A stretch of DNA of 64,000 nt from Selaginella moellendorffii (GCF_000143415.4 NW_003314334.1:906822-970821); one strand, 5' to 3'. Counted from the stretch's first letter, positions 9,653 through 40,229 are shown. A program made the numbers and translations. Notes: generated from the sequence alone by a model not told the origin.

Positions 9653-12600
9653 TTAGATTTTTCCGGTGTACTTGAAGTTTTTCTCGTAGTCTTTCCTAAT
9701 CATCGCAAGATTGCTTCTCAGAGGTCCTTCTGCTAGATCAACAGTGAGAATCTCATAACACGAATGCAAGGCGTAACCTCCAAGTGCGGCGTGGAGTTGT
9801 TGTAGATCTTGAGACGAGCTCAAGAGTGCGTACACGCCCGGTCGAAGCTCCTTGTCCACCTCCCTGAAAGGAAGTTTTGGTTTACGATACGAAGGGAAAA
9901 GAAAGGGACTTTACCTGTCCAGGCCGGCTTCAAAAGGTCCAGCTCCTGACAAAACGGACAGATAATCGGAGAGGACGTTTATGCAGTACCTTCCCAAGGT
10001 CTCTTTCTGTTCTCCGAGCTGGATCGACGGGAAACAATGTTTCAGGCAAAAAAACATGTAAAACACGGCAAAGAAAAGTTACCTCTTCATATATTCGCCG
10101 AAGCCAACGGGCACACTGCATAGCAGTAACCGTAGTCATTGTACAAAGCTTTGATGAACTTTCCAAACAGTGTAACAGCACACGAAGAGATTCTCCCAGA
10201 AGTGCAATAGCGCGGCCGCTCTCTCTGTGAGAGGACAAAAGAGAGCGCTTTAGATGGATGCTCAAAATGATCAAATATGTTACCTTTTCCGATGTTTTAA
10301 GACTGTATATAGCAGCTTGCACGATGCAATATAAAAATGCAAGACGACCTCAGCGTCCACATTGCCATCCTCAATCTTGAAGCGGGGATTCCTGTGCTTG
10401 GTGTAGCTTGGGAGCTTGAACTGATATACTGGCTTTAAAATACCCACGGGACTGTGCAGAGCAAGAGCAACGTGAGTGGCTTTCATACAGAAAATGACTT
10501 CGCGGGAAGCGATCCTTGTTATGATGTCCAGGCTCTGGAGAAGGACGGAGGAGGAGGCGACTGTAGCTGGCCTCTCTTCCTGCCGTTTTTTCTTATAAAA
10601 CACAGCTGGTCCTTGAAGATGCGTGATTAGATTCACTAGCTCGGCGATGAATCTCGGTGAGTACTTTGCAAGGACTTTTAAACGTCGTGGACCTGTAAAA
10701 CAAAAAGACGATCATAGAGGTCACGATGGAAAAATAAAACAGCAACTTACCTGAAACAGCGTCCAGAGCGACTGCGAGGCACTCCACACAAGCCGCAGTT
10801 ACAACTCCAACTCTTCCATCGTCAGAGTCACCGAGTCTCAAAGCGGAGCTGAACTTGGAAACGTCAGAGCTTCCACAAAGTGCCTTCTGTATAGTCTGAA
10901 ACGCAAGAAGAAGCTGCGGCACTGGTGCGAACTTGATGAGCGCACAAAACGAATCCCTGATCGCAGCACCCAAGTCTCCGTAGAAACGGCCAAAGTCGAC
11001 ATGCAGCTCTCTGCCGGCTCTTATTTCAGACGACTGCAGCCATATAACAGCTCCCAGGAGATCAATATGCAGCTTCAAAAGTCTCAGGTACTCTGCTCGA
11101 GCTACCGGAGGTTGAAGCGAAGGTAGAACAAGCCCGAGTGACTCCATGCACTTGACTGCTCCGAAAATCCAGAAGAAACACGTACGCTTGGCGGGCGCAG
11201 CGTGATACATAAGGGACGTTGCCTCGGTGAGAAGTGAATAGACAACTTCCAGCACTGCACTGACTGTCGAAGGAGCCACCGTCTTACCGATAGAAGACGC
11301 TTTCAAAGCATACGGCGAAAAGTGTAGACTTCTCAGCTTCACCAAGGCAGCCATGGCCATCAAGAGCTCCCCAACGATTTCCGATCGTTCTCGTTGCAAG
11401 CCGCTGTCGAACAGCCAGCTTAGAGCAGCTTTCTGCGATTCGTCCAGTGGATGTAGCTGAGATGTCTCGTCCGCTCGAACGTTCACTTCCTCCATGTCAA
11501 TGTCTTGAGCCGGTTCTACTTTTCGATCCTCGTCGTCGCTCGAAGTTTCAGACTTTCCTTCGTCTTCTTGCTCTTCTTTTTCACTGTCGCTTTCATCGGT
11601 GCTCTCATCGTCCTCCTGGTCCTCCAGTAGTGTCTCAACTTTCAGGGCCTTCACATCGATGTTTTTCGAGTCCAGAAACACGTCTAGAATACTGCTCTGC
11701 CGTGACTCTGTACCCCGGGCTTCTGCAATACGTCCCAGTAGAATGGTAACAACCTTTTGCTCAATACTTCTGAGAGACGACACCCAAGGAATCGTTGTCA
11801 GCCATCGTAACTCTCTGCTTTTGTCTTCTTGACATTTTCTGTCCAGGAGCCCGAGAGTTTCAGCAGCTGTCCACAAAATACTCCTTGCGAAAGATATCGA
11901 TCCAAGAAAGCTGTAGCTTTGCAGCTCATTGTCATCTGCGTCCCAGGCACTGTCGGCTTGCTGTATACATTTGAACAGGAACTTAGTGTCGTCGTCCCTG
12001 TCAACTGATTCCGCCCGTGCTTCGGACCGCTTGACAAGGAGGCAGCTCGATTCCAACGCGAAGATCTGGTTCAAAATATGCTGGATGTATGACTGCGTAC
12101 TCTTGACAGCGGAAGCCAGCGAGCCAGCGATGGATTCAGCCACAAAAGCACTCCTTTCTTTCAGCTTCATTGCGCAATCTGAGGCCATGTTGATGGATCG
12201 ATATAGCCAGCTGAAAAGGTCCATATCGAATCCCGGAACGTCGCTACCGATCTGTTTGCTGCGGGTAATCGCGAATGCTTTTGTTGTCTGTCTGCAGACG
12301 GCAAAAAGTTCAAATATCTTGACACCTGAGATTTCTGATCTGTTCTTGATAATTGCAGCCAACATACTTAAGGCGAGTCTAAGAAAAAAAAAACATGTTC
12401 TTATAAGCAAAACAAAGAAAAAATGCGGTACCTTTCGACATAGCAAACCGAGAAAATGCACTGCATTGTATCCAGCTCCTTCTTTTGTCCCCAAGGAAAG
12501 GAAGCAATAAGCTGGAAAAGACCAATGCATGTTTCTAACGTTGAATCCGGCAACAGCTGGATGTTCAAGGTTGACGACTCAAAGCCTGTAAAAGAAGGCT

Positions 12601-15600
12601 TCTTGAACTTCTTGAATTCTATTTCCAGATGCAGAAGTTTCCGTAGAGCCTTCCAAGCAGCTGGTAGAAGAGCAGTTTGGACCCTCTGCAAAAAGAAATG
12701 TCTAAACGTTAGAAACCATCAAACTAGAAGATAAACACCACCTGGTTCTCACAAAATAGAAGATTATGAAGAAGCTCACGAGTAATGGGACGTTGAGCGA
12801 ATGCTGGAGGTTCAGGCCTCCAAGTGATCAAGGCGTAACTAAGGCAGCTCGTAAGACATTTCCTGGAAGCATATCTTGACCAAAGGTCTATTGTACGAGA
12901 AATGAGTTGCCATCTTGCCGAAGGCATGCTTTCCTCCGTTAGCATCACCACAACTCCATTCCAAGACGTGATCACCGTCTCACCAATCTCCTTGAGTGAG
13001 CACGAGGTGCCACCATCAAGGAGTAAAACGACCAAGTCTTTCGCTTCGGCCTTGAAATCCAGTAGCAACTGACGGACATCACCTTCTGACGATGACTTTC
13101 CGTTCTGATAATCCACACTGTCGAGCGAGTGCAAAACTGGATCTTCAACAGAAGAGGAGGTAAGTTTCGCTTCGAAATACTCAACGGACTGGATATACCT
13201 TTGCAAGTCACTCAGGCGCTGAATTGCAAGGAGATCCATCAAATAGTATAACGATGGAAATGACGTCTTCTGCGTCACTAGAAGAAGTCCGTTGATAAGA
13301 GCGGTAACGCTAGTTGCCTGTCCAATCCACGAGAAAGTGGACAAGTCCTGCGGTTCCAAAGCTATCTCCATCCAGTCGATTTCTAACGAGTCCAAGTGTA
13401 GCTCGTGCGCTGCTTCAGCCGCTTTCCCGGCCTTGAGAGGGGCCATAAGTGAGATACACTGTCGGTGCAGCATCCGGCATATTAAGTATAGCCGAAGAAG
13501 AAAGAAAGCCTTCAACCCTGCCCATTCTGCAAGTTTCTTCACTTTTCCTTTCGAGATCTTGACCAGAAGATCGGAAAGTGGCACTGCTACAACTGAGGTG
13601 ACAAGATGCCTCACGTTGACCCCTACTTGGTAAGCATTTGTTGATGTAACGTTGAGATTTTCCAAAATCTGTGCATGAAGTTCCCCTGAGGCCATCACCA
13701 CTGCTTCGACAACCACGTCGGTACTGTTGATCATTCGAAGCGTTTCCAAAGCGTCCCTTGACACCATGTTCACGACTTCAGGAGCTTGAGCTTCGGGCAT
13801 GTTCTCGATCATCTTCCGTAGTGCATTTAGAAGTAAAGGATCGCAAAAGAAGCTTTTAAGACCCTGCGCGAACAAAGAGGGCGACAGAAACTGCAAGCCT
13901 TCGTCTGGTCCCAGTGATTTCACGGAAGAAAAGAGCACCGGTAAAGCACCTGAAATTCAAGAGCTAGTTAAGAAGCAGTTTTGAATTTGTCCGAAAGACT
14001 CACCGAGATCTCGAAGCTCACTCGAAATTCTCAGCATTTGGCATCCAACCGCGATCACGTCTGCAACTTCGCTAGTTTCTATAACCGTTGCTGACAGTAG
14101 AATGCGCCAGAAGTCCTCCACGCCACCTTCAGCCGCTCGATGATCTATATCCAAGACAACGCCTATGCCACGAACTATTTCCCCGTAGCCAGCTGCTATC
14201 AATCCCGTCATCCCGCTATCGTTTACAGCTGAAAGTGACTTTGCGTAATCCACAAGCACCCCGTAGTATCGCTTGATAAACTTAAAGTGGCCATTTGTCG
14301 GCGTGTCTCTCGTTGGAACATACACAACCTGTTCCTTCACAACGCGAAACAAGCTACTTGTCGCAGACACCAAACTTGTCTTCCCGGAAACCTCTTTCTC
14401 GTCGATAAGTTGCTGGATCAGAGGCAGCGAAAGCTCTACAAAGACCAGAAACTGCAGCTGGTTGTCAGTGAGACGCACACTCTTGGACTCGCCGTCTTCA
14501 CCACCCTGTTGATTTTCCTTTTCCTCAGATCCTTCTTGCTGTCCCACCCCTCGTACCCCGAATACATCCGACTTGATGGATGCCCTGTGACCCTTAAAGC
14601 TTTGTGCGAACAGCCTCAGCAATTCCCCGAGCGATGCCAGCGCTGTGAAAGACCTTTCCTGTCCCAGCTCTTTCAGTTTCTCGAACAGAAGCTTGTGACT
14701 GGTTGTGGTTTCCATTTCCTGCGCGCTGGAATCGTTGAGCCACTTAGCAGCAGCAGTGGATGCCTCTGGGAACCCCTCTATAGGAACTGTGTGAAAAAGC
14801 CCGTAGTCCAAAACTCTGGCTATCGCCGTGCGTAGCAACTCCACCGCGTCACAGCCTTTTCTCTCGTAGATCAAAACCCCCGTCAACTTAAGCAGCGGAC
14901 ACAAGAGCTTCTCGACTATCGCTTGGAATGCCGCCTTGGGATTCGCCTGAGTCGTGAGAAACTTCCCGAATCCATCTGCTATCAATGCCCCGGTCTCCAG
15001 CATAGATCTTTCGGGTTCGCTACGCAGCAAAGCCTCGAAGAACGACGAAGCAAACAGGGTCCAATCTAGAAGCTGTGGCCGGAAACTCCTGTCATAAGTG
15101 TGTAGCAAGAGCTTCAAAATCTCGATCACCGAAACGACCACCACCTCGAGCTCTTCACTCTCATTGCCATCCAGAAGAAGTTCTCCCTCTCTTCTCCTCA
15201 TACCCTTCGTTGTGAGAACTAAATCTATTCCCTTGAGAATACCTGGATAGACGTGAAGGTTTCCCTGGCTCGACAAGCACCAGTGCAAGATAGCCCAGGA
15301 ACGAGCGTCGGTAGTCACATTTCCCCCTTTGTCCTTGGATCCTGGCTTCGCACTGGAAATAATCTCTGATTGAATCCATCCCGCCAGGAACGACACAAAC
15401 TGCGGCATCGGCACTCCTCTCGAGAGCGATCCCTTCTTCTGGCATTCCACGAACTGGAATGCCTGATCAAGCTTGCTGCAAAGGAGACACGATCGTGAGC
15501 AAGAACACGGAGAAAATCGAGAGCACGCAGAGAGACCTGGAATTTGGCGCGCTGGACAGCCGCAGCAATCGCATGAGCTCCACATTGGAAACCTCCAAAT

Positions 15601-15673
15601 CCTGGCCCTGAAGCTTGGGCTTCTTCACGGCGCCGGCGCCGCTCGTCGACGCCGACGACGTCCTCTTCCCCAT
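9653..15673 (-). CDS. URB2: Nucleolar pre-ribosomal protein URB2/Npa2, multi-exon
   Basis: Large exons match track ORFs 13957-15585, 12724-13938 and 10593-12530. C-terminus LRPGVYALL...LQQLHAALG|EGPLRSNLAMIRKDYEKNFKYTGKI* matches the Urb2 domain. Telo-box-like AACCCTAA at 15681-15688. Confidence 0.85.
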
Positions 15674-17100
15674 CACGAAGAACCCTAAACCTTACCAAAC
15701 AAACTAAATTCCCATTTCGAATCCATAACATTGACTAAATAATATCTATCATAGCAAAAATTATGTTTACTACTAATATCTTCCAAGCTTGAGCATTGCT
15801 GGTTCTCTCACAAACAAAAGTTGGCGATGATATATACTTTGTAGATATGAACGTGGAAACAAAGGCTGTTCCGAAATCGATATCATACGAAAACAATGAG
15901 CATGAAATATACTAAGCTGTTTCAAAAGACACATCCATCCACGAAAGTGGTCGCAAAGTTATTTAGAATCTAAAGCTTTAAGAAGTAATGAACAAAACTT
16001 TCTACGGATCAACCAATCCCATGTTTCTCTTTTTCCTAGGCAAGACCACTCTCGTTTTTGTGAAAGATGGGCCGCCTTGTCCTAGATCGCTGCTGCTTGC
16101 ATTTGCTTTGCTCCTGCAGCAGTCGTCGGTCTTCCTTCTCGCAGCATTTCATTGTTATTGCACAGAATCAGATATTAATTTAAAAAGTCATCTAAAACAA
16201 TGTATTATTATTATTATCGAAATCTCTGAGGCATGACAATTTGGCTACACGGGGCCAGCAGCATGGAGAATCCTCTGCGCCGCCTTGTTGTAGCAGACAT
16301 AGTAAGCCATGGAAGCTATCGCGGTGAGAAAAGCGAAAGCCGCACCGATCCCAAATATCTCTTGCCGGGCAGCCTTACAGTCGTGGAATGAAGTGCGTTT
16401 CACTTTTTTCATCGATAAATTTACTCGCGAAGAACCCACAAGAATGAAGATCTCCGCGAAGAGAAACATCGTCCTGGCAGTGAGAAAACAACGCTTTTAG
16501 GTGAGCTCGAGATCATAAACGAAGAACACTTTTTACCATGAGAAGATACAAAGGATGATAGTGCAAATGTTTGCAACCTTTGCCTTGGGAGGGCACGGGC
16601 AGCACCTACATTTGGTGGAAAGAAGTAAAAAGAGCTGCCCGGCTGCGAGAAAAATCGCGGAGGCGGCTCCAAGAGTCGTGGCCCGGTGAAACTCACAGGT
16701 GAAAGTCTGGGCATTTCCGCTAACTCTTTGAGCAGTGGCCTATATCCATCCAAGAACATAGCAACATTTGCAAGTGATCTTAGAGAATTCTTGGTATAAA
16801 CTCTCCAGAGTTGCAGCTTACGTGAGTGATTCGAAACGCCGCTGCTACTGCGAGTGCGAACGATACAGAGTGCAAGATGAAAGCTAACGAGACGATCTGG
16901 GGGGACTTTCTCATCGCCATAAGCACCAAAAACTTCGAGATCTCGCACCAGAAACTTTGAAATCTCGCGAAAAAATACGAAGACTGGCCTCGCGGTGTGT
17001 TTAAAAGGAGCAAGCCGGGCGGCAGTGGACTCTAAAGGTAAAGTGGCATCCATTATTATGCTTTAACTTCTACGGAGGAGCCGACTCATTGTCCCACAGG
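15561..17100 (+). repeat. Segmental duplication copy A (URB2 5' end, promoter and DUF1218)
   Basis: Colinear with 38730-40229 from cgcagcaatcgcatgagc to gactcattgtcccacagg. Confidence 0.95.
16245..16920 (-). CDS. DUF1218 family 4-TM protein (MODIFYING WALL LIGNIN-like), copy A, 3 exons
   Basis: Spliced product MAMRKSPQIVSLAFILHSVSFALAVAAAFR...TCEF...CRCC...IFSW|TMFLFAE...C...IFGIGAAF...YY. Confidence 0.85.
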
Positions 17101-17172
17101 ATCATACGCATCTTCAATCATATCAATCTAAGTCATAGAGGAAATGACTTAGATTCAAAAGGCTTAAATGGC

Positions 17173-17560: not shown

Positions 17561-19509
17561 TCAGCACCAACACTTGTGTATGGTTTGCTGTACTTGTGTT
17601 GACAGTGCCTTTACCGGTAGCTCTGCAAGTCCTAAAAGTGAGGAGGCCATCCGTAGCACTGCAACAAAGTCGAAGCCCACAGCCTCATCGCTGGGATGAG
17701 AAACCACAAACGCGAGCCAAGCCTGCAGCGCTGGGCTCACAATGCCGGAGCTGGCAAGTTCATCATCAACTCTAAAACCTTGGCGCAATTCCCGACACGC
17801 CTGGACTTCTCCTCTCAGGGCGGCCCCTTCCCAAGGCAAACACTCGCCGGCCATGTCCAAACACACGTAGGCAACCGACACTAGCTCCGACATGAGGCCT
17901 GGCATTCTTCCCTCGAGCACCTCCCAAGAACTGTAGAGCAAATTGACTGCTGTTTCGTGCTGCTCTTGCTGCTTCAAATCCACGGCACAGCCAAAATCAT
18001 ACAAGTAGAAACGAGTGCCACCTTCTCGTGTGTGCTGGACACCGATGTTCGAGGGGTTTATATCAGCGTGAGCAATGCCTTGGCTCTGCAAAAGCACCAG
18101 CGATCAGCTCTCGGCACAGATGGCATGGTAAGCTTACATGGAGAACGAGGACGGACTCTGTCAAATCCTTGCACAGCCGCTCTACAACTCGCGCTTCCAG
18201 CGGACGCGTTGTGTAAGTGACTGCAAACGACTCTCCGTCCAGCTCCGTCAGCAGAACAGGCATTTGGTTCCAAAAGCCAGAGAAAACGACGCGCGGGAAC
18301 AAGTCGCTATGCTCGTTGAGACGCTGGAGAATCCTTGCGTCATTCTCTAGCTGAAAGGTTTAGAGTCGTGAATATAAAGACGAAGAGCTCCATGTGTATT
18401 ACCTGATCCCAAAGTCGAGAGTGGAGGCAAAGCTGCGTGATTTGCTTCTTGGTGTCCATCGAGTGGCCGATTTTCATGAGGAGAAGCTGGCCTGTGGCCT
18501 CGTCCATCACTTTAAAGACCGAATTGGATACGCTCGACGTACTAAACTGGTGCAGTACCCGAAGCCGTAGATCGTGCTTGCCGCCGGTGGCTATGGTTAT
18601 AAGCTGGCCGGGTTCGTAAGACATGGGTCGTATGCTCATCACGTTACCCAGCCAAGATAAGAACCCAAGCTCCTGAAAATACTATTAGTGAGATTTATAG
18701 AAGAACACGAACACAAACCAGTAAGGGAGAATCGTTGGCGTCGCCAAAGAGAAAGGGCTTAGATTGTAGGAGCTGGCCATGTCGGACAACCACACAAACA
18801 AAGCGGTCCCTCTGCAGGATCACGGCTGGAAAACTTTCTTTGGTGTTTGAAGTTACGAACTCCAGTTTCCTGCAGAGGAGAGTTGTAAGTTTTGAGTTTT
18901 GTACAAAAGGATTCAAAAGGATACAAACCCAGCAGAGATTTCATCCCTGTGATCGAACAGCCTCACACCAAAGCAAGCCTCGAAGTCTCCAACCAGCTCC
19001 TGAAACTGACCCTGATCGCTGCAGGTGTGAATGCGTGTAATCGCGGACACCATGGCCCTGCACTGCTCGTCCAGAGTGCTGGACTTGTTAGTAAACCGCA
19101 GGAACGCCGTGGCGGAAACGTGATCCAAGTGTAGCAAGCCCTTGAACACGGGAAACATGCTGTGCAGCCGATCAAACTCGAGAATACCACAACTGGTCTT
19201 TTGCCTTTTGTAAGATTCGGGAGCGGCCACGCGGAAATAATACTTGCGACAAGGCTCCAACGCCTGCTGAGCGTTCTGAGCCCGTATTTTCATCCAGTGG
19301 TTCTTCCCGGTGAGAAACCAGAAGACACTGCCTGGAGGGAGCCTCTCACCAGCCCGATGCTTGATCCTTTCAACAGCTTCACCCAAAGTGCTGCCCGGCG
19401 CCACCTGAATCGAATCCACGCCTGGGTGAGCAAGTACAGCCTCAGGCGTTGGCGCCAAGCCCGCGCCTGGCTCCCTCTCCACCTTACAGAACACTACATT
19501 ACCCTCCAT
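17561..19509 (-). CDS. 579-aa protein: N-terminal header, central alpha/beta domain and CK1/FunK1-like kinase (Crinkler/RHS-like). Exons 19509-18929, 18869-18719, 18672-18403, 18350-18138, 18085-17561
   Basis: Four GT-AG introns (59, 46, 52, 52 nt) join into one open frame. Kinase motifs LLMKIG, HADINPSNI, YLYDFG and SELVSVAYV...LPW. The kinase call is strong; the family call is inference. Confidence 0.8.
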
Positions 19510-19544
19510 CTATCTCAAAAAAACCCTAGCGCCGGCTCAAAAAG

Positions 19545-20340
19545 ATGGCGCTTTGGTGACGACTCATGCAAGCATCGAACTCTCGCTGCAAATGGATGCT
19601 CTTGACTTGCCTGCTGGTCTCACATACGAGCAGTCGATGATCGATAGGAGCAAGGTCCACATCTCGATCTTCACGAACGGGATCTGGCCCCGAGTTCGAG
19701 GAAGGCGGCTGCTCAAAACCATTGAGAGCGGTGAGACTTACTACTTTCGATTCGACTGCTGCTTCCAGATGAGGAACCCGAGCACAAAGTGATTAAGCAG
19801 TGCTTTACTGAGAGTAGAGCTCTTGCTTCTGGAAGATACCACATTGTCTCTAGCCTGGTGGATGCATTTCCACAGCTCGTTCGGGTTTTTGGCATTCCTG
19901 TGGAGCCGACAGTGTTCGAAAAACTGTGGGTAGCAAAAGGTGACAGCGAGCCAGCAGAGATTTGCGTGAAGCAAGTAGCTCCATGGGAAGAAGCTTCTGG
20001 ACACAATTCTAGTCCCAGGATGCGACGCAACGAGGGTGCAGGTCGAGATTAACAAGACGTTTCTTCACGACGAGAAGATTGACGTTCAAGCTTCGATGCT
20101 CGAGCTGCCTCAGGCATCGTGGAGCTCGTCATGGAATACAAGGGATGTCTGTCCGAGATGGAAAGATCCAAGTGGTTGGGCGGGTGCAAACGTCCCTGGA
20201 ACATCGGCATCTGAGGAAGCTCCTCCTTCCTGGCTCGGTCATGAGTAACCTTTACCTCATTCCCATTCAGGTTGGTACAAACGGGCAAGATGACATTATG
20301 TTCCAAGCTTCAGATGAGACACCCCAAGGTCAAAATTGAT
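19545..20340 (+). pseudogene. Frameshifted paralog sharing the N-terminal header of the adjacent kinase gene
   Basis: MDALDLPAGLTYEQSM aligns with VDSIQVAPGSTLGEAV, and WPRVRGRRLLKTIESGETYYFR with WMKIRAQNAQQALEPCRKYYFR. A TTCGA duplication at 19746-19755 breaks the frame. The 3' end is uncertain. Confidence 0.65.
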
Positions 20341-21323
20341 GCTGAATCGCTAGTTCTCTGACGATGGTTGCAATGTAGACTTGGACAAACGAAGAGTAAT
20401 GAACTGCAAAAGCATTTTTGGTATTGATTCTTCCCAAATCCCGACTGCATACTCCTGCGCTTAGAAAGCTATAGAATGGAACACTTTCTCAGATGACTAC
20501 CATCGATCTCGCTTTACCTCTCCCATTTCTTCGAATCACCGGCACCAGCCAAGGTGAATCGCTCTAAAGTCTGAAGACAAGCGTTTGGCCCTAACTTTTA
20601 CTACACGCATGAAAATATACCACCAAAAGTCAACTTAGATCTAAGATCGCGCCCTCATCATATTTATAGTATAGGTGGTAACAAATTATAACACAAGTAG
20701 GTAATGCATCTTCAATCATATTAATCTATCCGAGTCTTCTGAGTTTTGAACACGCTGCCACTCATCCAAAAGTGCCCGGCCCGCCCAGCGATCTCAGTGC
20801 ACTGCATAAAAAGCTATAGCGATGCTGACTGTGGGAGAGCCGCTATAATCGAATGCAAAGCCCGCATCTGCGCTTAAAAGAGATGTTGAAAATAATCGCA
20901 CGCCATTTGATGCATCTCAGCCAGATCAGTGACAAGTCGACCCGCAGCATCTTTCAACCCGAGAATAGAAACACTTCCCTCTGTTACACCAACCAGCAGC
21001 GTGGGGACTGCAGAACCACTCCCACGGGCACCGGCTGCAAGCTAGTTAACAGGGTGAGCGCACCAACCGGAGCGAACTACTCCCGCGAGCTCTATAGCTG
21101 GCTGCAAGTCGGTGGTCGTGATGGACTGATCGTGGTGAAAGATGATGGTAAGTGGTACGTGGTCGCCAGCAGAGATATAAGGTGTGTTGATGATGATGAT
21201 GTGATGATGATGAGTGATCAAGCCTGCTACGCTGCTTGAGCACAAATACTGTAGTCTCAGCCGCAGGACAAGTGCTAGTCCTTACTTCCACTGGAAATCA
21301 GACATTCGTCTCTTACTTACATG

Positions 21324-22204: not shown

Positions 22205-23643
22205 AAGACAACTCACACCAGCATCCACACACCCCAGCATCCGGATCCACTCGAATCAGCCCCAAAACCAACTTCTTCTCATCAACAACTCAACATCTCC
22301 AAAGGAAAACGTCAGCTGCTCGCCTAAGACTTGGTTTCTCCACCAGCTGAGAACGTCATTCTCACCACCCAAACCCCTCTACATGTTCCATGAAAGAAAA
22401 CATTGACTACCTTTGCTAATCACTCGCAGAACACGCAACCATAGCAAATGCTGCGACAAAAATTCCACCCCTTCAACAAAATTTCAAGTGGAAGATTTGG
22501 GCCGTTCAACCCCAGTGGATAGTTCCACATCTGGGCCGTTCATTCAGCATCAATGCGAAATGCTCATCTCCAACCACCTCAAAGAATCCAGACCGACCAC
22601 GCCACCCACATCCAATGAAGCAGATTAAGCCTCTAGCAACTTCAAATCCCGGGACCAAAAACACAGCAAACCCTAGTGAGGAACACCAGGATCATGGAGG
22701 AGGAGCAAGAGCAGCAGCTATGCCTCAGCCACAGAGTCAGGTACGCCGTGATTACGACAAGATCAGGAAGGAGTACAAGGATAAACTCTGCGACTTGAGC
22801 TACTGCACCCGTAAGTTGTTTGAAGCCCTTGATCAACGCATGTACCACGAGCTCCATGACCAAGCGAACCACTTCCCATGCTGTGTATGATATGCTGTGT
22901 ATGATCAAATCTATGGTTGGTATGGTATGATCAGATGTCAGCTGGTGTTGGGAAGTGGTTCGCTTGGTTGTGGAGCTCATGATGCATGTGTTGATCAAGG
23001 GCTTCAAACAACTTGCGAGTGCAGTAGCTCGGGTCACAGAGTTTATCCTCGTACTCCTTCCTGATCTCGTTGTAATCACGGTGTACCTGACTCTGTGGCT
23101 GAGGCATGGCTGCTGCTCTTGCTCCTGCTCCGTAATCCTGGTGTTCCTCGCTAGGGTTCACTGTGTTCTTGGTCTCGGGATTTGAAGTTTGCTGGAGGCT
23201 TAATCTGCTTCATTGGATATGGTGGCATGGTCAGTTCGGATTCTTTGATGTGGTTGGAGATGAGCATTTCAGATTGATGCTGAATGAACGGCCCAGATGT
23301 GGCACTGAAATTAATGTATCCACTGGGGTTGAACAGCCCAAATCTTCCGCTTGAAATTTTGTTGAAGGGGCAGAATTTTTGCTAATGCTTGTCGCGGCAT
23401 TTGCTGAAGGAGGCATGGTTGCGTGTTCTACGAGTGATTGGTGAAGGTAGTTGATTTTTTCTTTCATGGAGCGTGTCAAGGGGGTCGGGGCGGTGAGAAT
23501 GACATTCTCAGCTGGTGGAGAAACCGAGTCCTGGGCGAGCAGCTGATGTTTTCCTTTGGAGATGTTGAGTTGGTGGTGAGAAGAAGTCGCTGATTTGAGT
23601 GGATCCAGGTGCTGGGGTGAGTGTGGAAGCTGTGAGTTGTCTT
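22205..23643. repeat. ~680-bp-arm inverted repeat of the Ty3/gypsy 3' region
   Basis: 22205-22878 is the diverged reverse complement of 22949-23643, with a 70-nt spacer. ORFs 22615+ and 22931- encode near-identical peptides. Confidence 0.93.
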
Positions 23644-30098: not shown

Positions 30099-33000
30099 TG
30101 AAACGAACAAGAGAGCGAACCCTAGGCCAACCTCCCAACCCTTAAGGCGTTACGGCCTTAAATCCCACAGGCCATGGAATATTCTCGGAATATTCCCGTG
30201 GTTCATGTCATTCTCCCCTCCCTCATGACCCAGCCACATACGGTAGCCTCGAGAAGCTAAACGAGCCTCAAATGAAGGGAGTCCAAGGCAATACGGCCAT
30301 GGAGAAAAGATGTGCAAACGGCAACACCAACGTCGCAACAAACGGTCACGAAAGAAAGAAAGCAATACGGCTTTCTCACATGACAATACGGTCATGGAAA
30401 ACAAGAGAATGAGAATAGAACAAACGGCTCAAATCATATAGCAATACGGCTATAGAACTCAATTCTCCTCTTCCTCAGGAATGTCATCCAAGTCATAACC
30501 AAAACTCGGAAACACTCTCTTCACGTCATCCTCCGTTTCCCATGTAGCTTCGTCCATGGAATAACCATTCCACTGAACTAACAACTCCCTAGTTGTCTTT
30601 CGGCGTGTTTTCACCAATCTTTGAGCAAGAATATTGGCCGGACCAGCCTTCTCTGCATCAATCTCTGGAACCTGGATGATGGACTGATCCACGATATCAC
30701 CAGAGTGCAAACACGCTTTAAGCTTGCTCACATGGAACGTTGGATGAATCTTCGAACTAACTGGCAAGTCCAAAGTGTATGCAAGATCCCCTACACGCTG
30801 TAAAATTGTCCAAGGTCCACAATACCGTGGAGACAACTTAGCACTGCCACCTCCTTTTAGAGACCGTTGTGCATCCGACAGCTTAAGGAAAACCTTGTCA
30901 CCAACTTTGTACTCTTGATGACGACGATGCTCATCAGCCAATCTTTTGTCTCGTTCTTGAGCTTGCCTCATGTTCAATTTTGCCAACTCAAGCTTGTCTT
31001 GCATATCCTCCAGGAAATCACAAGCATGAGGAACTCGAACCAAAGCCAAATTCAAACTCACAGGAGACCTAGGCTCATAACCATACATCGCCATAAAAGG
31101 AGACATGCCAATAGCCGATTGATGAGCGCTATTGTGAGCAAACTGAAGCAAAGGCAAGTATTTTTCCCATACTCCCTGTCGAGTCAAGTTTCCCACAAAA
31201 GACCGTAGCATATCTTCTAATAGCTGATTCATGCGCTCTGTCTGCCCATCAGATTGTGGATGCTCACCACTACTCATGCTCAGTTTAGTCTCTAGTTTTT
31301 CAAAGACCGTTTGCCAAAACTTGGACGTGAACTTAGGATCTCGATCACTCACAATGTCACCCGGCAAACCATAGAGACTGAATAACCGGTCTACAAACAA
31401 CTGAGCAAGTTCAGAAGCTTTTATCGTTGTCTTCACAGGGAAGAAGTGAGCCATCTTCGTCAAACGATCCACAACAACCCAAATAGCATCATTTCCTCGA
31501 AAGGTTTTGGGCAAACTAGTGATAAAGTCCATCGAGATGCTATCCCACTTATTCTCGGGTACACGTAAAGGATGATAGAGGCCAGCGAGCTTCTGATGAT
31601 CAACTTTGACCGCCTGGCAGGTCAAACAACCACGTACGTACTTCTCAACATCTGACTTCATCCCAGGCCAAAAGAAATGCCTCTTCACCAACATATACGT
31701 TCTCAATACCCCCGGATGCCCAGCACTTGGAACATCATGACACTCAACCAAAATCCGTTTGATGAGTTTGTCAACACGAGGAACCACAACACGTCCCTTC
31801 TTCACCAGGATTCCATTTCGTATTTCGAATGACGCAAACTTGTCACCCTTTAAATCTGTAGAGGCGTCCCTCAACAAAACCTTCGCACGAATATCAGTGA
31901 TGAAGGAGTCGAAGTCAGCAAACTCCTTAAGCTCATCCAAGAGATCGCTGGATAGCTTCACAAACGAGATAGAATTTACCATCCTGGATAATGCATCAGC
32001 CACCTTATTATCACCTCCATGCTTGTACCGGATCTTAACAGACATTTCCTGCAGGAACTCTTGCCAACGAGCAAGATGGCCTCGAAGATCCTTTTGTCGA
32101 CTGAAATATTGGAGAGATTGATGGTCTGAATCCACATGGAAGTCCGATCCATATAGATAATGTCGCCATTCCTTCACAGCAGCAATCACAGCATATAACT
32201 CCTTGTCTCGAGTAGACCAATTCCGCTGTGTGGCATCAAACTTATGGCTCATGTACGCAAGAGGATGCCCAACTTGAAGCAAAATGGCTCCAATAGCAAT
32301 GTCACTTGCATCTGTCTCAACAACAAGAGGCTTTTCAGGATCAAAAATCTTCAACACCGGAGCAGAGACACAACACTGCTTCAAACGTTGAAATGCCACT
32401 TCACACTTCTCATCCCAACCATGAATAGTAGCATGTTTCGACGTATTCTGGAGAAGATCAGTTAAAGGGGCTGCTATCCCTGAAAAGTCCTTCACAAATC
32501 GTCGAAAAACTCTAGCCATACCAAGGAAACTACGGAGATCATGCACTGTGGAAGGTATAGGCCAATCAACCACGGCCTGAATCTTTGCGGGATCAGCTCT
32601 CACTCCATGTACCAAAATCAAATGCCCGAGATATCCAATCTCCTCTAAAAAAAACTCGCACTTGGATAACTTCGAGTAGAGCTTGTTGTCCCTCAAAAGT
32701 TGTAAAACACTTCGCACATGCATCTCATGTTCCTCCATGGAAGAGCTGAATACCAGGATATCATCAAAATAATCAATTGCAAACTTTCCCAAGTAAGGTT
32801 GTAGAACGTGATTCATCAATCTCTGAAAAGTTGCAGGAGCATTTGTCAAACCAAACGGCATCACTAAAAACTCGTAGTGACCTGTCCTTGTCCGAAATGC
32901 AGTTTTCGGAACATCCTCTGGCTGGACACAAATCTGATGATATCCTTGCCTCAAATCAATCTTCGAAAAATATCGAGCTCCACGAAGACGATCAAGCAAA

Positions 33001-35136
33001 TCATCGATACGAGGGATCGGGAACATATTCTTCACTGTCCTATCATTTAATCCCTTGTAGTTCACACAGAGACACCATGTACCATCTTTCTTTTTGACCA
33101 TCACCACTGGAGCAGCCCAAGGAGACTTACTGATCCGTAACCACCCTTTCCGAAGGTATTCAGCAAGCTGCCTATTAATCTCCTCATCTTCAGCGGGACT
33201 AGTACGAGTCGGTTGTCGCTGAAAAGGAGTAGCTCCCGGAACCAAGTCAATTTCATGCTGAATTCCACGTTCTGGAGGCAAACCATCAGGTAACTCATCC
33301 GGAAATACGTCACGGAACTCCTCCTGAATGGAATCCACCTGTGCCTCATGCCTACGAACGTACTCCAAATCAGACATGATCATATTAGAAAGAAACGGGT
33401 ACACCACAAAAGAATTAGCTATCTCATGCATGCATGTAACCAACTCCAAAGCGTTAATCAATGGAGTATCACTATTGTCTGTCCCGACAATCTCTTTGAT
33501 AGTGCCACCAACTTCGATACGCAGAACATTACGCTCCCAATCGATCCCTGGCTTCCTGTCATAAAACCATTCCTTCCCAAGAATAACGTCTGTGCGACCA
33601 AGATCCATAACCTGAAACAAAGGATGGTCGAGAATCCCTTGAACCGTCAAAGGAACACTCGGAGCCCATTCACCGTAAACACGAGTGCTATGTCCATCTG
33701 CCATAACCACCTTGTAGATTACTGAACTCTTTTCCACAGGCAAACCAAGTTTTGTCACCACCTTAGAGCTCAAAAAATTGTGTGTAGCACCTGGATCGAA
33801 AAGAATACTAACAGCATGTCCTTGAATGTCCCCCTTGGCCTTCACAAGTTGATTGCGCATAGAACCATTAATCTCTATAGAGTTGATACGAACTCGAGAC
33901 TTAGATTCTTGAACTTTTGCCACAGGGTGTGGAAGAGCCACCACAGCAGATGCCTGAACTGTATCCACGATGGATTCCACCGCATTCACCTTAGCATTCT
34001 TTGATCCCTTCACAAGAGGACAATCCTTGCCATGATGTCCAGCCTTATGACAACGAAAACAATTGCCCTCCACCTTGTCCTTCTCTCGTTGGTCTAACCG
34101 ATGTCTTTTTGCCTCATTGTCATCTCCACTCTTCAAGCTACGACGAAGCAATGGCCGTTTCTTCCCTGAAAATGAAGTATTGGTGGGTTGGTCATCACGT
34201 TGACCACCCCGGAGACCATCCGTTTGACCAGCGTTGACCGAATTGACCGACGGTTTGGGCGAAAAGATTTGAGCCTTAGTGATAGCATCAGTCAATGTTG
34301 CTGGAAAATCCTTCTTGACCTTCTGCTGCACATCCACTGAGCTCAATCCTTTGATAAAACATTGCACCTTTAGCAGCTCATTATAGGTGCCCGTGAGACT
34401 AAGGCAAAGATCACGGAACTTGCGGGCATACGCATCCAAAGACAAAGTCCCCTGCCGGATCTCTAACAACTGATTCACGAGATCAACCTCTTCAAACTTC
34501 TTGACAAACGAAGCGTGGAAAACCTTTATCAAATCAGTCCAAGAAGTCGGCATCGGATTAGCTTTGATGTAGTTCTTCCACCACGAAGAAGCATGGCCCG
34601 TAAGCTTCGTCACAAAGAAATCTATCTTCACCTTATCCTCACAAGGATTGTGAGACCAACAACTTTCCCACAATTCCAACCAAGAATCAACCTCTTGACT
34701 ATCACAAACATCCGGTGATGATTTCCATTCCACGATACCATAATCCTTGACATGCTTGACGTACCAATGGTAATCACGGACATGAGATTGATTCAACCCT
34801 TGAGGGTTCATGCGAAGCAAGAAATCCTTGATGAGATTGACGGAATCCTTAACCTCCTTTATGTCGCTTTGAACTGCAGAAATCTGGCGTCCTTGCCGCA
34901 CAACAACATCATCAAGAGTCTCTTCTGCATCGTCATGGCTATCCTCACTAACGCCATACTCCTCATCAGGATCAATATCTTGCTCTCCCGCCATCCCCAA
35001 AAGAACGTGCTGCTCCAATACCAATGAAACGAACAAGAGAGCGAACCCTAGGCCAACCTCCCAACCCTTAAGGCATTACGGCCTTAAATCCCACAGGCCA
35101 TGGAATATTCTCGGAATATTCCCGTGGTTTGTGTCA
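30099..35136 (-). mobile_element. Full-length Ty3/gypsy chromovirus (Reina-like), 5038 bp
   Basis: 112-bp TG..CA LTRs at 30099-30210 and 35025-35136 with 3 mismatches. TSD TACGC (30094-30098, 35137-35141). PBS TGGTATTGGAGC (iMet-like). PPT adjacent to 30211. Confidence 0.97.
30459..34994 (-). CDS. Gag-Pol polyprotein (gag, zinc knuckle, PR, RT, RNase H, IN, chromodomain), single open frame
   Basis: CFRCHKAGHHGKDC, LFDPGATH, KIDLRQGYHQI, YFDD, ETDAS, HHCC, SMDFI, SDRD, DGQTER, GPW and LVQWNGYSMDEATWE. Confidence 0.97.
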   Translation of the reverse strand: MAGEQDIDPDEEYGVSEDSHDDAEETLDDVVVRQGRQISAVQSDIKEVKDSVNLIKDFLLRMNPQGLNQSHVRDYHWYVKHVKDYGIVEWKSSPDVCDSQEVDSWLELWESCWSHNPCEDKVKIDFFVTKLTGHASSWWKNYIKANPMPTSWTDLIKVFHASFVKKFEEVDLVNQLLEIRQGTLSLDAYARKFRDLCLSLTGTYNELLKVQCFIKGLSSVDVQQKVKKDFPATLTDAITKAQIFSPKPSVNSVNAGQTDGLRGGQRDDQPTNTSFSGKKRPLLRRSLKSGDDNEAKRHRLDQREKDKVEGNCFRCHKAGHHGKDCPLVKGSKNAKVNAVESIVDTVQASAVVALPHPVAKVQESKSRVRINSIEINGSMRNQLVKAKGDIQGHAVSILFDPGATHNFLSSKVVTKLGLPVEKSSVIYKVVMADGHSTRVYGEWAPSVPLTVQGILDHPLFQVMDLGRTDVILGKEWFYDRKPGIDWERNVLRIEVGGTIKEIVGTDNSDTPLINALELVTCMHEIANSFVVYPFLSNMIMSDLEYVRRHEAQVDSIQEEFRDVFPDELPDGLPPERGIQHEIDLVPGATPFQRQPTRTSPAEDEEINRQLAEYLRKGWLRISKSPWAAPVVMVKKKDGTWCLCVNYKGLNDRTVKNMFPIPRIDDLLDRLRGARYFSKIDLRQGYHQICVQPEDVPKTAFRTRTGHYEFLVMPFGLTNAPATFQRLMNHVLQPYLGKFAIDYFDDILVFSSSMEEHEMHVRSVLQLLRDNKLYSKLSKCEFFLEEIGYLGHLILVHGVRADPAKIQAVVDWPIPSTVHDLRSFLGMARVFRRFVKDFSGIAAPLTDLLQNTSKHATIHGWDEKCEVAFQRLKQCCVSAPVLKIFDPEKPLVVETDASDIAIGAILLQVGHPLAYMSHKFDATQRNWSTRDKELYAVIAAVKEWRHYLYGSDFHVDSDHQSLQYFSRQKDLRGHLARWQEFLQEMSVKIRYKHGGDNKVADALSRMVNSISFVKLSSDLLDELKEFADFDSFITDIRAKVLLRDASTDLKGDKFASFEIRNGILVKKGRVVVPRVDKLIKRILVECHDVPSAGHPGVLRTYMLVKRHFFWPGMKSDVEKYVRGCLTCQAVKVDHQKLAGLYHPLRVPENKWDSISMDFITSLPKTFRGNDAIWVVVDRLTKMAHFFPVKTTIKASELAQLFVDRLFSLYGLPGDIVSDRDPKFTSKFWQTVFEKLETKLSMSSGEHPQSDGQTERMNQLLEDMLRSFVGNLTRQGVWEKYLPLLQFAHNSAHQSAIGMSPFMAMYGYEPRSPVSLNLALVRVPHACDFLEDMQDKLELAKLNMRQAQERDKRLADEHRRHQEYKVGDKVFLKLSDAQRSLKGGGSAKLSPRYCGPWTILQRVGDLAYTLDLPVSSKIHPTFHVSKLKACLHSGDIVDQSIIQVPEIDAEKAGPANILAQRLVKTRRKTTRELLVQWNGYSMDEATWETEDDVKRVFPSFGYDLDDIPEEEEN

Positions 35137-38729: not shown

Positions 38730-40229
38730 CGCAGCAATCGCATGAGCTCCACATTGGAAATATCCAAATCCTGGCCCTGAAGCTTGGGCTTCTTCACCCA
38801 TCACGAAGAACCCTAAACCTTACCAAAACAAAAATTTCAAATCCGAAGCTAAACATTGAATTATTTATATTTAATAATCTTTATCTAGAATAAGTTTCCA
38901 AACTTGAGCATTATTATGTGTTTGACTATCGTAGCTGGTTCACACAAACAAAAGTTGGTGATGATATGTATATTTTTGTAGATATGAACGTGGAAACAAA
39001 GGCTGTTCCGATATCCTATGAAAAGAATGAGCATGAAATATACTAAGCTGTTTCAAAAGACACATCCATCCACTAAAATGGTTGCAAAGTTATTTAGAAT
39101 CTAAAGCTTTAAGAAGCAAAGAACAAAACTTTCTACATATCAACCAATCCCATGTTTCTGTTTTTCCTGGGCAAGATCACTCTCATTTTTGTGACAGATG
39201 GGCCGCCATGTCCCAGATCGCTGCTGCTTGCATTTGCTTTGCTCTTGCAACAGTCATTAGTCTTCCTTCTCACAACATTTCATTGTTATTGTGCAATTAA
39301 TTTAAACAATCATCTAAAACAATGTACTATTATTATTATCGAATTCTCATAGGCATGATAATTTGGCTACACTGGGCCAACAGCATGGAGATTCCTCTGC
39401 GCCTTGTTGCAGACATAGTAAGCCATGGAAGCTATCACGGTGAGAAACGTGCAAGCCGCGCCGATCCCAAATATCTCTTGCCGGGCAGCCTTAGAGTCGT
39501 GGAATGAAGTGCCTTTCACTTTTTTTCTCGAGAAAGTTACGCGTGAAGAACCCACAAGGATGAAGATCTCTGCGACGAGAAACATAGTCCTGGCAGTGAG
39601 AAAACAACGCTTTTACGTAAGCTCGAGATCATCAAGATCATAAATGAAGAACACTTTTTACCATGAGAAGATACAAAGGATGATAGTGCAAATGTTTGCA
39701 ACCTTTGCCTTGGGAGGGCACGGGCAGCACCTACATTTGGTGGAAAGAAGTAGAAAGAGCTGCCCGGCCGCGAGAAAAATCGCAGAGGTGGCTCCGAGAG
39801 TCGTGGCCCGGTGAAGCTCACAGGTGAAAGTATCGGCATTTTCGCTAGATCTTTGAGCAGCGGCCTATATCTATCCAAGAACATAGCAACATTTGCAAGT
39901 GATCTTAGAGAATTCGTGGTAAAATCTCTCCAGGGTTGCAGCTTACGTGAGCGATTCGAAACGCCGCTGCTACGGCGAGTGCGAACGATACGGAGTGGAA
40001 GATGAAAGCTAACGAGACGATCTGGGGGGACTTTCCCATCGCCATAAACACCAAAAACTCCGAGATCTCGCACCAAAAACTTTGAAATCTCGCGAAAAAA
40101 TGCGAAGACTGGCCTCGCGGTGTGTTTAAAAAGAGCAAGCCGCGCGGCAGTGGACAGTGAAAAAGGTAAAGTGGCATCCATTATTATACTTTTAACTTCT
40201 ACGGAGGAGCCGACTCATTGTCCCACAGG
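38730..40229 (+). repeat. Segmental duplication copy B; URB2 exon-1 fragment carries a 41-nt deletion
   Basis: Colinear with 15561-17100; the equivalent of 15629-15669 is missing. Confidence 0.95.
39367..40045 (-). CDS. DUF1218 family protein, copy B, 3 exons
   Basis: Frame and splice sites retained. Recent paralog of copy A, with HDCK changed to HDSK. Confidence 0.8.

Follow-up and report, generated by a model that had tools for sequence, protein, structure and literature searches.

A transcribed kinase gene with a ubiquitin-like header in Selaginella moellendorffii and the probable relic of a header paralog that faces it head-to-head

Several plant kinases, among them the PB1-domain Raf-like kinases and the UBL-domain PI4K-gamma enzymes, carry an N-terminal beta-grasp domain that mediates oligomerisation or the binding of partners. 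A head-to-head arrangement is known from paired NLR genes such as RRS1/RPS4, in which both members are intact and co-expressed and which are conserved as pairs. Crinkler (CR) effectors, for example CRN8 of Phytophthora, bear a ubiquitin-like header; the definition of the kind by Zhang et al. (2016) is taken from its summary in PMC5289972. About one-sixth of CR C-termini combine a restriction endonuclease (REase) with a kinase, and reports of the CR kind extend beyond pathogens to land plants and to eukaryotes that live freely (PMC5289972). Here we compare these systems with a locus of Selaginella moellendorffii that lies in a stretch of 64,000 nucleotides (GCF_000143415.4 NW_003314334.1:906822-970821; the window, with positions counted from its first letter). 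Over 21,398 bp (34164-55561) the window matches scaffold GL377638.1 of the v1 assembly (GCA_000143415.2) with 100% identity and no gaps, and this scaffold encodes the amino-acid permease of the window letter for letter. The locus comprises a minus-strand kinase gene (17561-19509) whose predicted product opens with a ubiquitin-like (Ubl) header and, head-to-head with it on the plus strand, a partner stretch with a similar header. We favour, with moderate confidence, the reading that a live kinase gene is faced here by a decayed, old paralog of its header.

The kinase gene is real, spliced and transcribed. It consists of 579 codons and a stop, distributed over five exons (18929-19509, 18719-18869, 18403-18672, 18138-18350 and 17561-18085) that follow from spliced RNA contigs, GT-AG sites and the reading frame, and that are separated by four introns of 46-59 nt. 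Contigs from three presumed RNA runs of this organism confirm three of these four introns, with exact GT-AG joints at 18868|18928, 18350|18403 and 18085|18138 and 100% identity to the window; the 46-nt intron at 18673-18718 is inferred from its GT-AG sites and the frame alone. Parts of the kinase stretch are present in four presumed RNA runs, at a depth of only 2.5-9. A first-pass annotation of the same DNA had placed the start of the gene at ATG 19509, which is borne out by the spliced contigs and by an in-frame stop directly upstream of this ATG in the six-frame reading. Since no identical or near-identical protein was found among 1.84 billion representatives, we regard the gene as unannotated; it appears to have been missed, with no counterpart among the annotated S. 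moellendorffii v1 proteins, so that the Selaginella reference gains an expressed kinase gene. From a DNA run of this organism comes a contig with 2-5% divergence, which stems from the other haplotype or from a close copy. The 35 substitutions listed between this contig and the kinase coding sequence split into 13 synonymous and 22 non-synonymous changes, a ratio that suggests moderate constraint, and among the indels listed none falls within the ~1.66 kb of coding sequence (four further indels lie outside that listing).

The family to which this gene belongs is small. A phmmer search of the same 1.84 billion representatives with exon 1 returned a single true match, SELMODRAFT_427587, the other three matches being repeat proteins; SELMODRAFT_415101 belongs to the same 90% cluster. 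The scaffolds that encode these two proteins share the neighbours myosin XI, CPP1-like and ribosomal S6, so the proteins represent two haplotypes of one paralogous locus. The window kinase aligns with this paralog from end to end at 40% identity and shares its architecture. Word-indexed searches with exon 1, with the kinase half of the paralog and with a four-row N-terminal alignment found nothing beyond the paralog, and feature searches of the ESM Atlas gave no match. The kinase gene is a lineage-specific, live Selaginella gene. Together with its paralog it forms a small family of two loci, specific to lycophytes, in which a ubiquitin-fold header precedes an atypical kinase.

The encoded protein consists of a Ubl header, a linker that is mostly helical and poorly modelled, and an atypical Ser/Thr kinase domain of CK1/FunK1-like type. 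The header covers about residues 1-95 (19225-19509, minus strand) and is assigned a ubiquitin-like beta-grasp fold by structure prediction on the paralog, whose model can be applied to the window kinase because the alignment at 40% identity is unambiguous. With the four-row alignment as input, AlphaFold2 (AF2) models residues 1-91 of the paralog with a predicted local distance difference test score (pLDDT) of 67-90, in the order strand, short helix, strand, helix, strand, strand, 3/10 turn, strand; the single-sequence model of exon 1 was poor (pLDDT 43). Ubiquitin and UBL domains predominate among the Foldseek matches to the paralog model, at probabilities of 0.9-1.0 and E values from 7e-3 to 5e-2. 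VIA-align, an independent structural alignment against representatives, places only beta-grasp domains (Ubl, UBX, PB1, DIX and FERM-F1) among its top 50 matches to residues 1-93, with superpositions of 70-80 residues at about 3 Å and Z values of 6.3-8.1. Such Z values are common in these searches, and the fold is called because the match list is uniform, not because Z is high. No Pfam family matches the window header at E<=1, and none matches residues 1-110 of the paralog at E<=10 except for a weak RBD hit (E 0.025).

The position of this domain N-terminal to a kinase is what the window gene has in common with the PB1 Raf-like and PI4K-gamma kinases; the kinase families differ, and the PB1 and ubiquitin Pfam models both miss the window header. 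The header may serve the kinase in interaction or targeting. In the MAFFT alignment, strand 3 reads SVFWFLTGK, TRFSYVDEG and VHISIFTNG in the three header copies. The turn between strands 3 and 4 is basic in the window kinase (LTGKNHW, residues 61-76) and acidic in the paralog (YVDEG-YW, residues 56-67), and a strand-1 Lys is present in the window kinase only, not in the paralog. As a pure motif reading, these turns and this Lys might recall the distinction between type A and type B PB1 surfaces.

Exons 3-5 (17561-18672, minus strand) encode a divergent, CK1/FunK1-like Ser/Thr kinase domain, as judged from Pfam profiles, from structural relatives and from an alignment to a CDPK. Exon 5 matches positions 116-204 of the Pfam Pkinase model with 30.8 bits, under the cut-off of 31.7, and the paralog reaches 25-26 bits with the same model, likewise below the cut-off. 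The catalytic loop HADINPSN and the DFG motif align to the CDPK, and the hallmarks of the superfamily can be made out: the VAIK Lys in LLLMK, the alpha-C Glu in ENDA, the HxD..N loop in HADINPSN and DFG in YDFG. The catalytic Asp, the Asn and DFG are present and the canonical Lys of the catalytic loop is missing. On these motifs the product can be placed in the protein kinase superfamily; its catalytic activity is only predicted and stays unproven because of the missing Lys.

Among known kinases, FunK1 (Pkinase_fungal, PF17667) resembles the family in that the C-lobe of the paralog matches the end of the profile and in an H-x-D-I-S/N loop that lacks the usual Lys. The scores of the paralog (22.8 and 22.5 bits) remain below the cut-off of 24.1, however, only the last 90 profile positions are matched, and both the taxon and the N-terminus differ. 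CK1 and TTBK1 are the closest solved structures to the paralog by sequence (E ~1e-6), and the APE motif is degenerate in the window kinase as it is in CK1; on the other hand, identity to CK1/TTBK is very low, the window kinase is without the catalytic-loop Lys, and CK1 has neither the Ubl header nor the linker. In the AF2 model of the paralog, residues 100-260, between header and kinase, are helical or of low confidence, and neither a REase fold or motif nor a Pfam match was found in this low-confidence linker. The strings PG/PA and VLTRD/VVVRH in the linker could hint at a dead nuclease core, which is only suggestive.

The partner begins close to the kinase start. The first-pass annotation had set the start of a second gene at about 19545 on the plus strand, 35 nt from the kinase ATG, with a telo-box in between. 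A plus-strand ATG does exist at 19545, but it opens an ORF (open reading frame) of only four codons, closed by a stop at 19557-19559, and the header ORF starts at ATG 19592, so that the usable starts are 82 nt apart. This 82-nt spacer (19510-19591) holds the four-codon ORF and the telo-box AAACCCTA (19521-19528). The header ORF (19592-19792, plus strand) has 66 codons and a stop at 19790-19792 and resembles helix 1 and strands 2-5 of the kinase header; from ATG 19592, strand 1 is not evident in the MAFFT alignment. It is followed by a candidate GT-AG intron of 47 nt (19789-19835), unverified and proposed from a splice-site scan and the ORF path, with an alternative acceptor at 19853 that would lengthen it to 65 nt. 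A second segment that looks coding by its codon usage lies in another frame (19836-20052, plus strand; stop at 20050-20052). The stretch from 20053 to 20340 on the same strand has an exon-like GC content of ~0.50, is devoid of coding codon usage and is probably where the 3' part of the former partner gene has decayed.

Three colinear blocks had been proposed to link the two N-termini, and their alignment survives comparison with shuffled controls, although not in all its parts. In Smith-Waterman alignments the partner ORF scores 45 against the N-terminus of the window kinase (shuffles 21.5+-4.0) and 48 against that of the paralog (21.8+-4.3), each with z ~6 and with none of 1000 shuffles reaching the score; against residues 1-212 of a preliminary kinase model, 2 of 2000 shuffles did so. 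A profile hidden Markov model (HMM) of three headers gives the partner ORF 13.2 bits and a profile made from the paralog haplotypes only gives it 7.7 bits, and none of 5000 shuffles attains either value. Among 1917 six-frame pieces of the window, the partner is the best non-self match of both 110-column profiles (E 0.017 and 1.1). A search of the paralog loci with the partner ORF has its top match in the paralog header, at the equivalent position. Significance resides in the central block of the header (W..YYFR). MAFFT also places the first block as proposed, with MDALDLPAG... under VDSIQVAPG..., yet in Smith-Waterman alignments against shuffles neither block 1 nor block 3 is significant by itself, and the third, SLVDAFP/RLHSMFP, shows no significant similarity. 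Because the shuffle tests and the MAFFT colinearity agree, a homology of ~55 residues is supported; it is a modest, weak but real relationship over about 40-55 residues (helix 1 and strands 2-5). Downstream pieces of the partner (B, C and D) give no signal against the kinase linker, either with HMMs or in Smith-Waterman alignments against shuffles, and Pfam finds nothing on any partner piece. A further header copy at 28.8 kb, hinted at by tblastn, was not borne out when the frames were read.

We also weighed whether the header resemblance has arisen by chance, the plus-strand ORFs being non-coding sequence upstream of the kinase. Such an explanation would fit a tblastn E value of only 1.4 within the window, the E value of 1.1 that the paralog-only profile attains across it, the short span of the similarity and the failure of blocks 1 and 3 to reach significance by themselves. 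It is hard to reconcile with the shuffles, which none of the profile comparisons or of the Smith-Waterman alignments to either N-terminus failed to exceed, including those to the paralog, which had no part in the first-pass annotation, with the rank of the partner among the window pieces, with its top match at the corresponding position of the paralog loci, and with a similarity that is colinear with the secondary-structure elements. We consider chance very improbable. The headers are ~25% identical at the protein level and there is no colinear DNA similarity between the kinase side and the partner side, which agrees with the earlier view that the two sides represent an old paralogy and not a recent inversion; the partner may have originated by an inverted duplication. 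It would be the relic of an old paralog with the same kind of header, of which ~55 residues are still recognisable, followed by a coding-like segment and then by sequence from which the coding signal is gone.

The main alternative to a relic is a small gene that still lives. The coding signal of the partner fades after about 130 codons, and no frame is coding-like beyond about 19975, though the GC content stays exon-like to about 20400. In about 18 presumed RNA runs no contig holds the sampled words of the partner (shares 0.00), and of the contigs from three RNA runs that were aligned to the window none extends past 19292. The divergent DNA contig carries indels of -1, +1, +17 and -15 nt in the region of the header ORF, the last of them over the YYFR strand, and its spacer is longer by about 22 nt. 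We discarded a partner model with three exons (212-218 aa, ending at 20339), as its third exon is without coding codon usage.

Several observations weigh against a dead partner. With a 47- or 65-nt intron (19789-19835 or 19789-19853), the two segments join into an ORF of 137 or 131 codons that ends at 20050-20052, and only 4.4% of comparable non-genic ATG-ORFs reach at least 131 codons with one such intron. The codon-usage log-ratio is +0.21 per codon for the header ORF, within the top 6% of stop-free non-genic pieces, and +0.21 for the second segment (19837-19974), so that both lie in the top 5-6%. Since the one-intron ORF is rare and the codon usage coding-like, the partner could be a small live gene; moreover, the diverged header has remained free of stops for 79 codons, which implies long purifying selection and hence that any death was recent. 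The RNA evidence, too, consists of assembled contigs, which drop rare transcripts and cannot prove silence.

These points can be gathered into an explanation in which a live gene of two exons (19592-19788 and 19836-20052) is driven by a bidirectional promoter and produces a header-only protein of ~137 aa that modulates the kinase by PB1-like beta-grasp pairing. Besides the rare ORF and its codon usage, this explanation gains from the fold class of the header, which includes the PB1 and DIX oligomerisation domains, and from the net indels inside the ORF of the divergent copy, which are multiples of three (+18 and -15). However, the -15 indel deletes most of strand 5, the domain that starts at ATG 19592 is without strand 1, the tail matches nothing, the putative gene is held by no presumed RNA run, and there is no partner at the paralog locus. 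We therefore think a live partner unlikely. The first-pass annotation had called the partner broken, which holds only in part: the early stop after ATG 19545 and the change of frame speak for it, but one frame change could be a GT-AG intron of 47 or 65 nt. We read the partner as a relic that was long under selection and has died recently; apparently untranscribed, it would most likely serve now only as the 5' flank or promoter region of the kinase gene.

The head-to-head layout had also been taken to indicate a co-regulated module whose products may pair through the shared header, on the analogy of sensor/executor, toxin/antidote or drive systems. As in the sensor/executor pair RRS1/RPS4, the two sides are divergently oriented, share a short promoter region and carry N-terminal domains that are paralogous; the window partner is, however, decayed, unseen in RNA and absent at the paralog locus. 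At both haplotypes of that locus, on both strands, no divergent header partner or remnant of one was found, and upstream, on the same strand, stands a leucine-rich repeat gene. The proposed recurrence of divergent pairs thus fails at the only other locus, an outcome that the first-pass annotation had itself named as refuting its reading, although in a family of two loci that is too small for statistics. Nor do both members appear intact and transcribed: the kinase is, and the partner is absent from the RNA contigs, has a change of frame and loses its coding signal. A co-fold of the two headers scored 0.00 with an uncertain fold for the partner itself, and argues neither for nor against binding. 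The telo-box between the starts is present as described but not enriched, as the window holds three copies of AAACCCTA where 1.55 would be expected, and three or more occur in 19 of 100 shuffles. With coding that ends at ~130 codons, an indel-rich divergent copy and no partner at the paralog locus, a functional pairing, toxin-antidote or drive module is unsupported here.

A broader proposal holds that header-sharing genes are kept in Selaginella as divergent two-component modules, that their beta-grasp headers pair front-to-back in PB1-like fashion, that one member controls or guides the enzymatic domain of the other, and that the present locus is a recently disabled or weakly active Crinkler-like conflict or immune pair. 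We give this only slight credence. If head-to-head header pairs were general in the genome, they would represent a new class of plant two-gene modules, which this locus alone does not show.

The Crinkler systems offer a close parallel in architecture, now in a free-living plant instead of a pathogen: an N-terminal ubiquitin-fold header precedes an enzymatic domain that can be a protein kinase, and the same type of header occurs on different C-termini. In the same sense, the relic indicates that the header once stood on a different C-terminus, as would be expected where modular families shuffle their parts. In contrast to CR proteins, the window header has no Pfam header match and no LxLFLAK on strand 3, no REase is demonstrable, the family comprises two loci and is not expanded, and the host is a plant, with no hint of secretion. 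The two kinds of header share a fold class, and fold by itself does not prove common descent. We do not file the window gene as a CR member because its header failed the sequence test and no nuclease domain was shown.

It could still be argued that the locus is the remnant of a conflict module of the Crinkler or CR kind, made up of two header-bearing effectors (e.g. nuclease and kinase, or toxin and antidote) of which the second is dead here. CR proteins are built of a Ubl header and an enzymatic C-terminus, commonly REase plus kinase (PMC5289972), one kind of header sits on two different C-termini at this locus, and the pair is bracketed by a 23-nt direct repeat. Yet no Pfam model, whether for Crinkler proteins or for others, matches the header, neither the partner nor the low-confidence model of the kinase linker revealed a nuclease fold or motif, the arrangement does not recur at the paralog locus, and there is no sign of toxicity or immunity. 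We hold such an origin to be improbable, and retain the live kinase gene with a decayed header paralog as the better account.

The two copies of the 23-nt direct repeat (17108-17130 and 20706-20728, both on the plus strand) are identical at 22 of 23 positions and lie 3598 nt apart, and none was expected in 100 shuffles. They enclose a GC-richer block of 3.6 kb with both genes, and their similarity stops within about 25 nt; the repeat could have been left behind when the pair was inserted or duplicated as one unit. A dispersed repeat of ~1.5 kb occurs at 15561-17100 and 38730-40229 with 85% identity, the left copy stopping 8 nt short of the 23-nt repeat. At 22271-23587, nested inverted repeats with arms of 241, 107, 86, 75 and 65 nt (83-94% complementary) have the look of a foldback element or a long hairpin.

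Further along the window, three long ORFs (542, 404 and 645 aa) stand in a row at 10593-15585 on the minus strand; they are rich in Leu and Ser and without a Pfam match, and are probably the exons of one large helical-repeat gene, none being recorded as an exact gene product. Four MA3 domains (E 1.7e-91) mark the plus-strand ORF at 1022-2779 as a PDCD4/MRF-like translation regulator, an ordinary neighbour. The minus strand at 30459-35036 encodes an intact-looking Ty3/gypsy chromovirus polyprotein of 1525 aa, with gag, protease, reverse transcriptase, RNase H, integrase and chromodomain, and the window also encodes an amino-acid permease ORF of 465 aa, far from the kinase and its partner.

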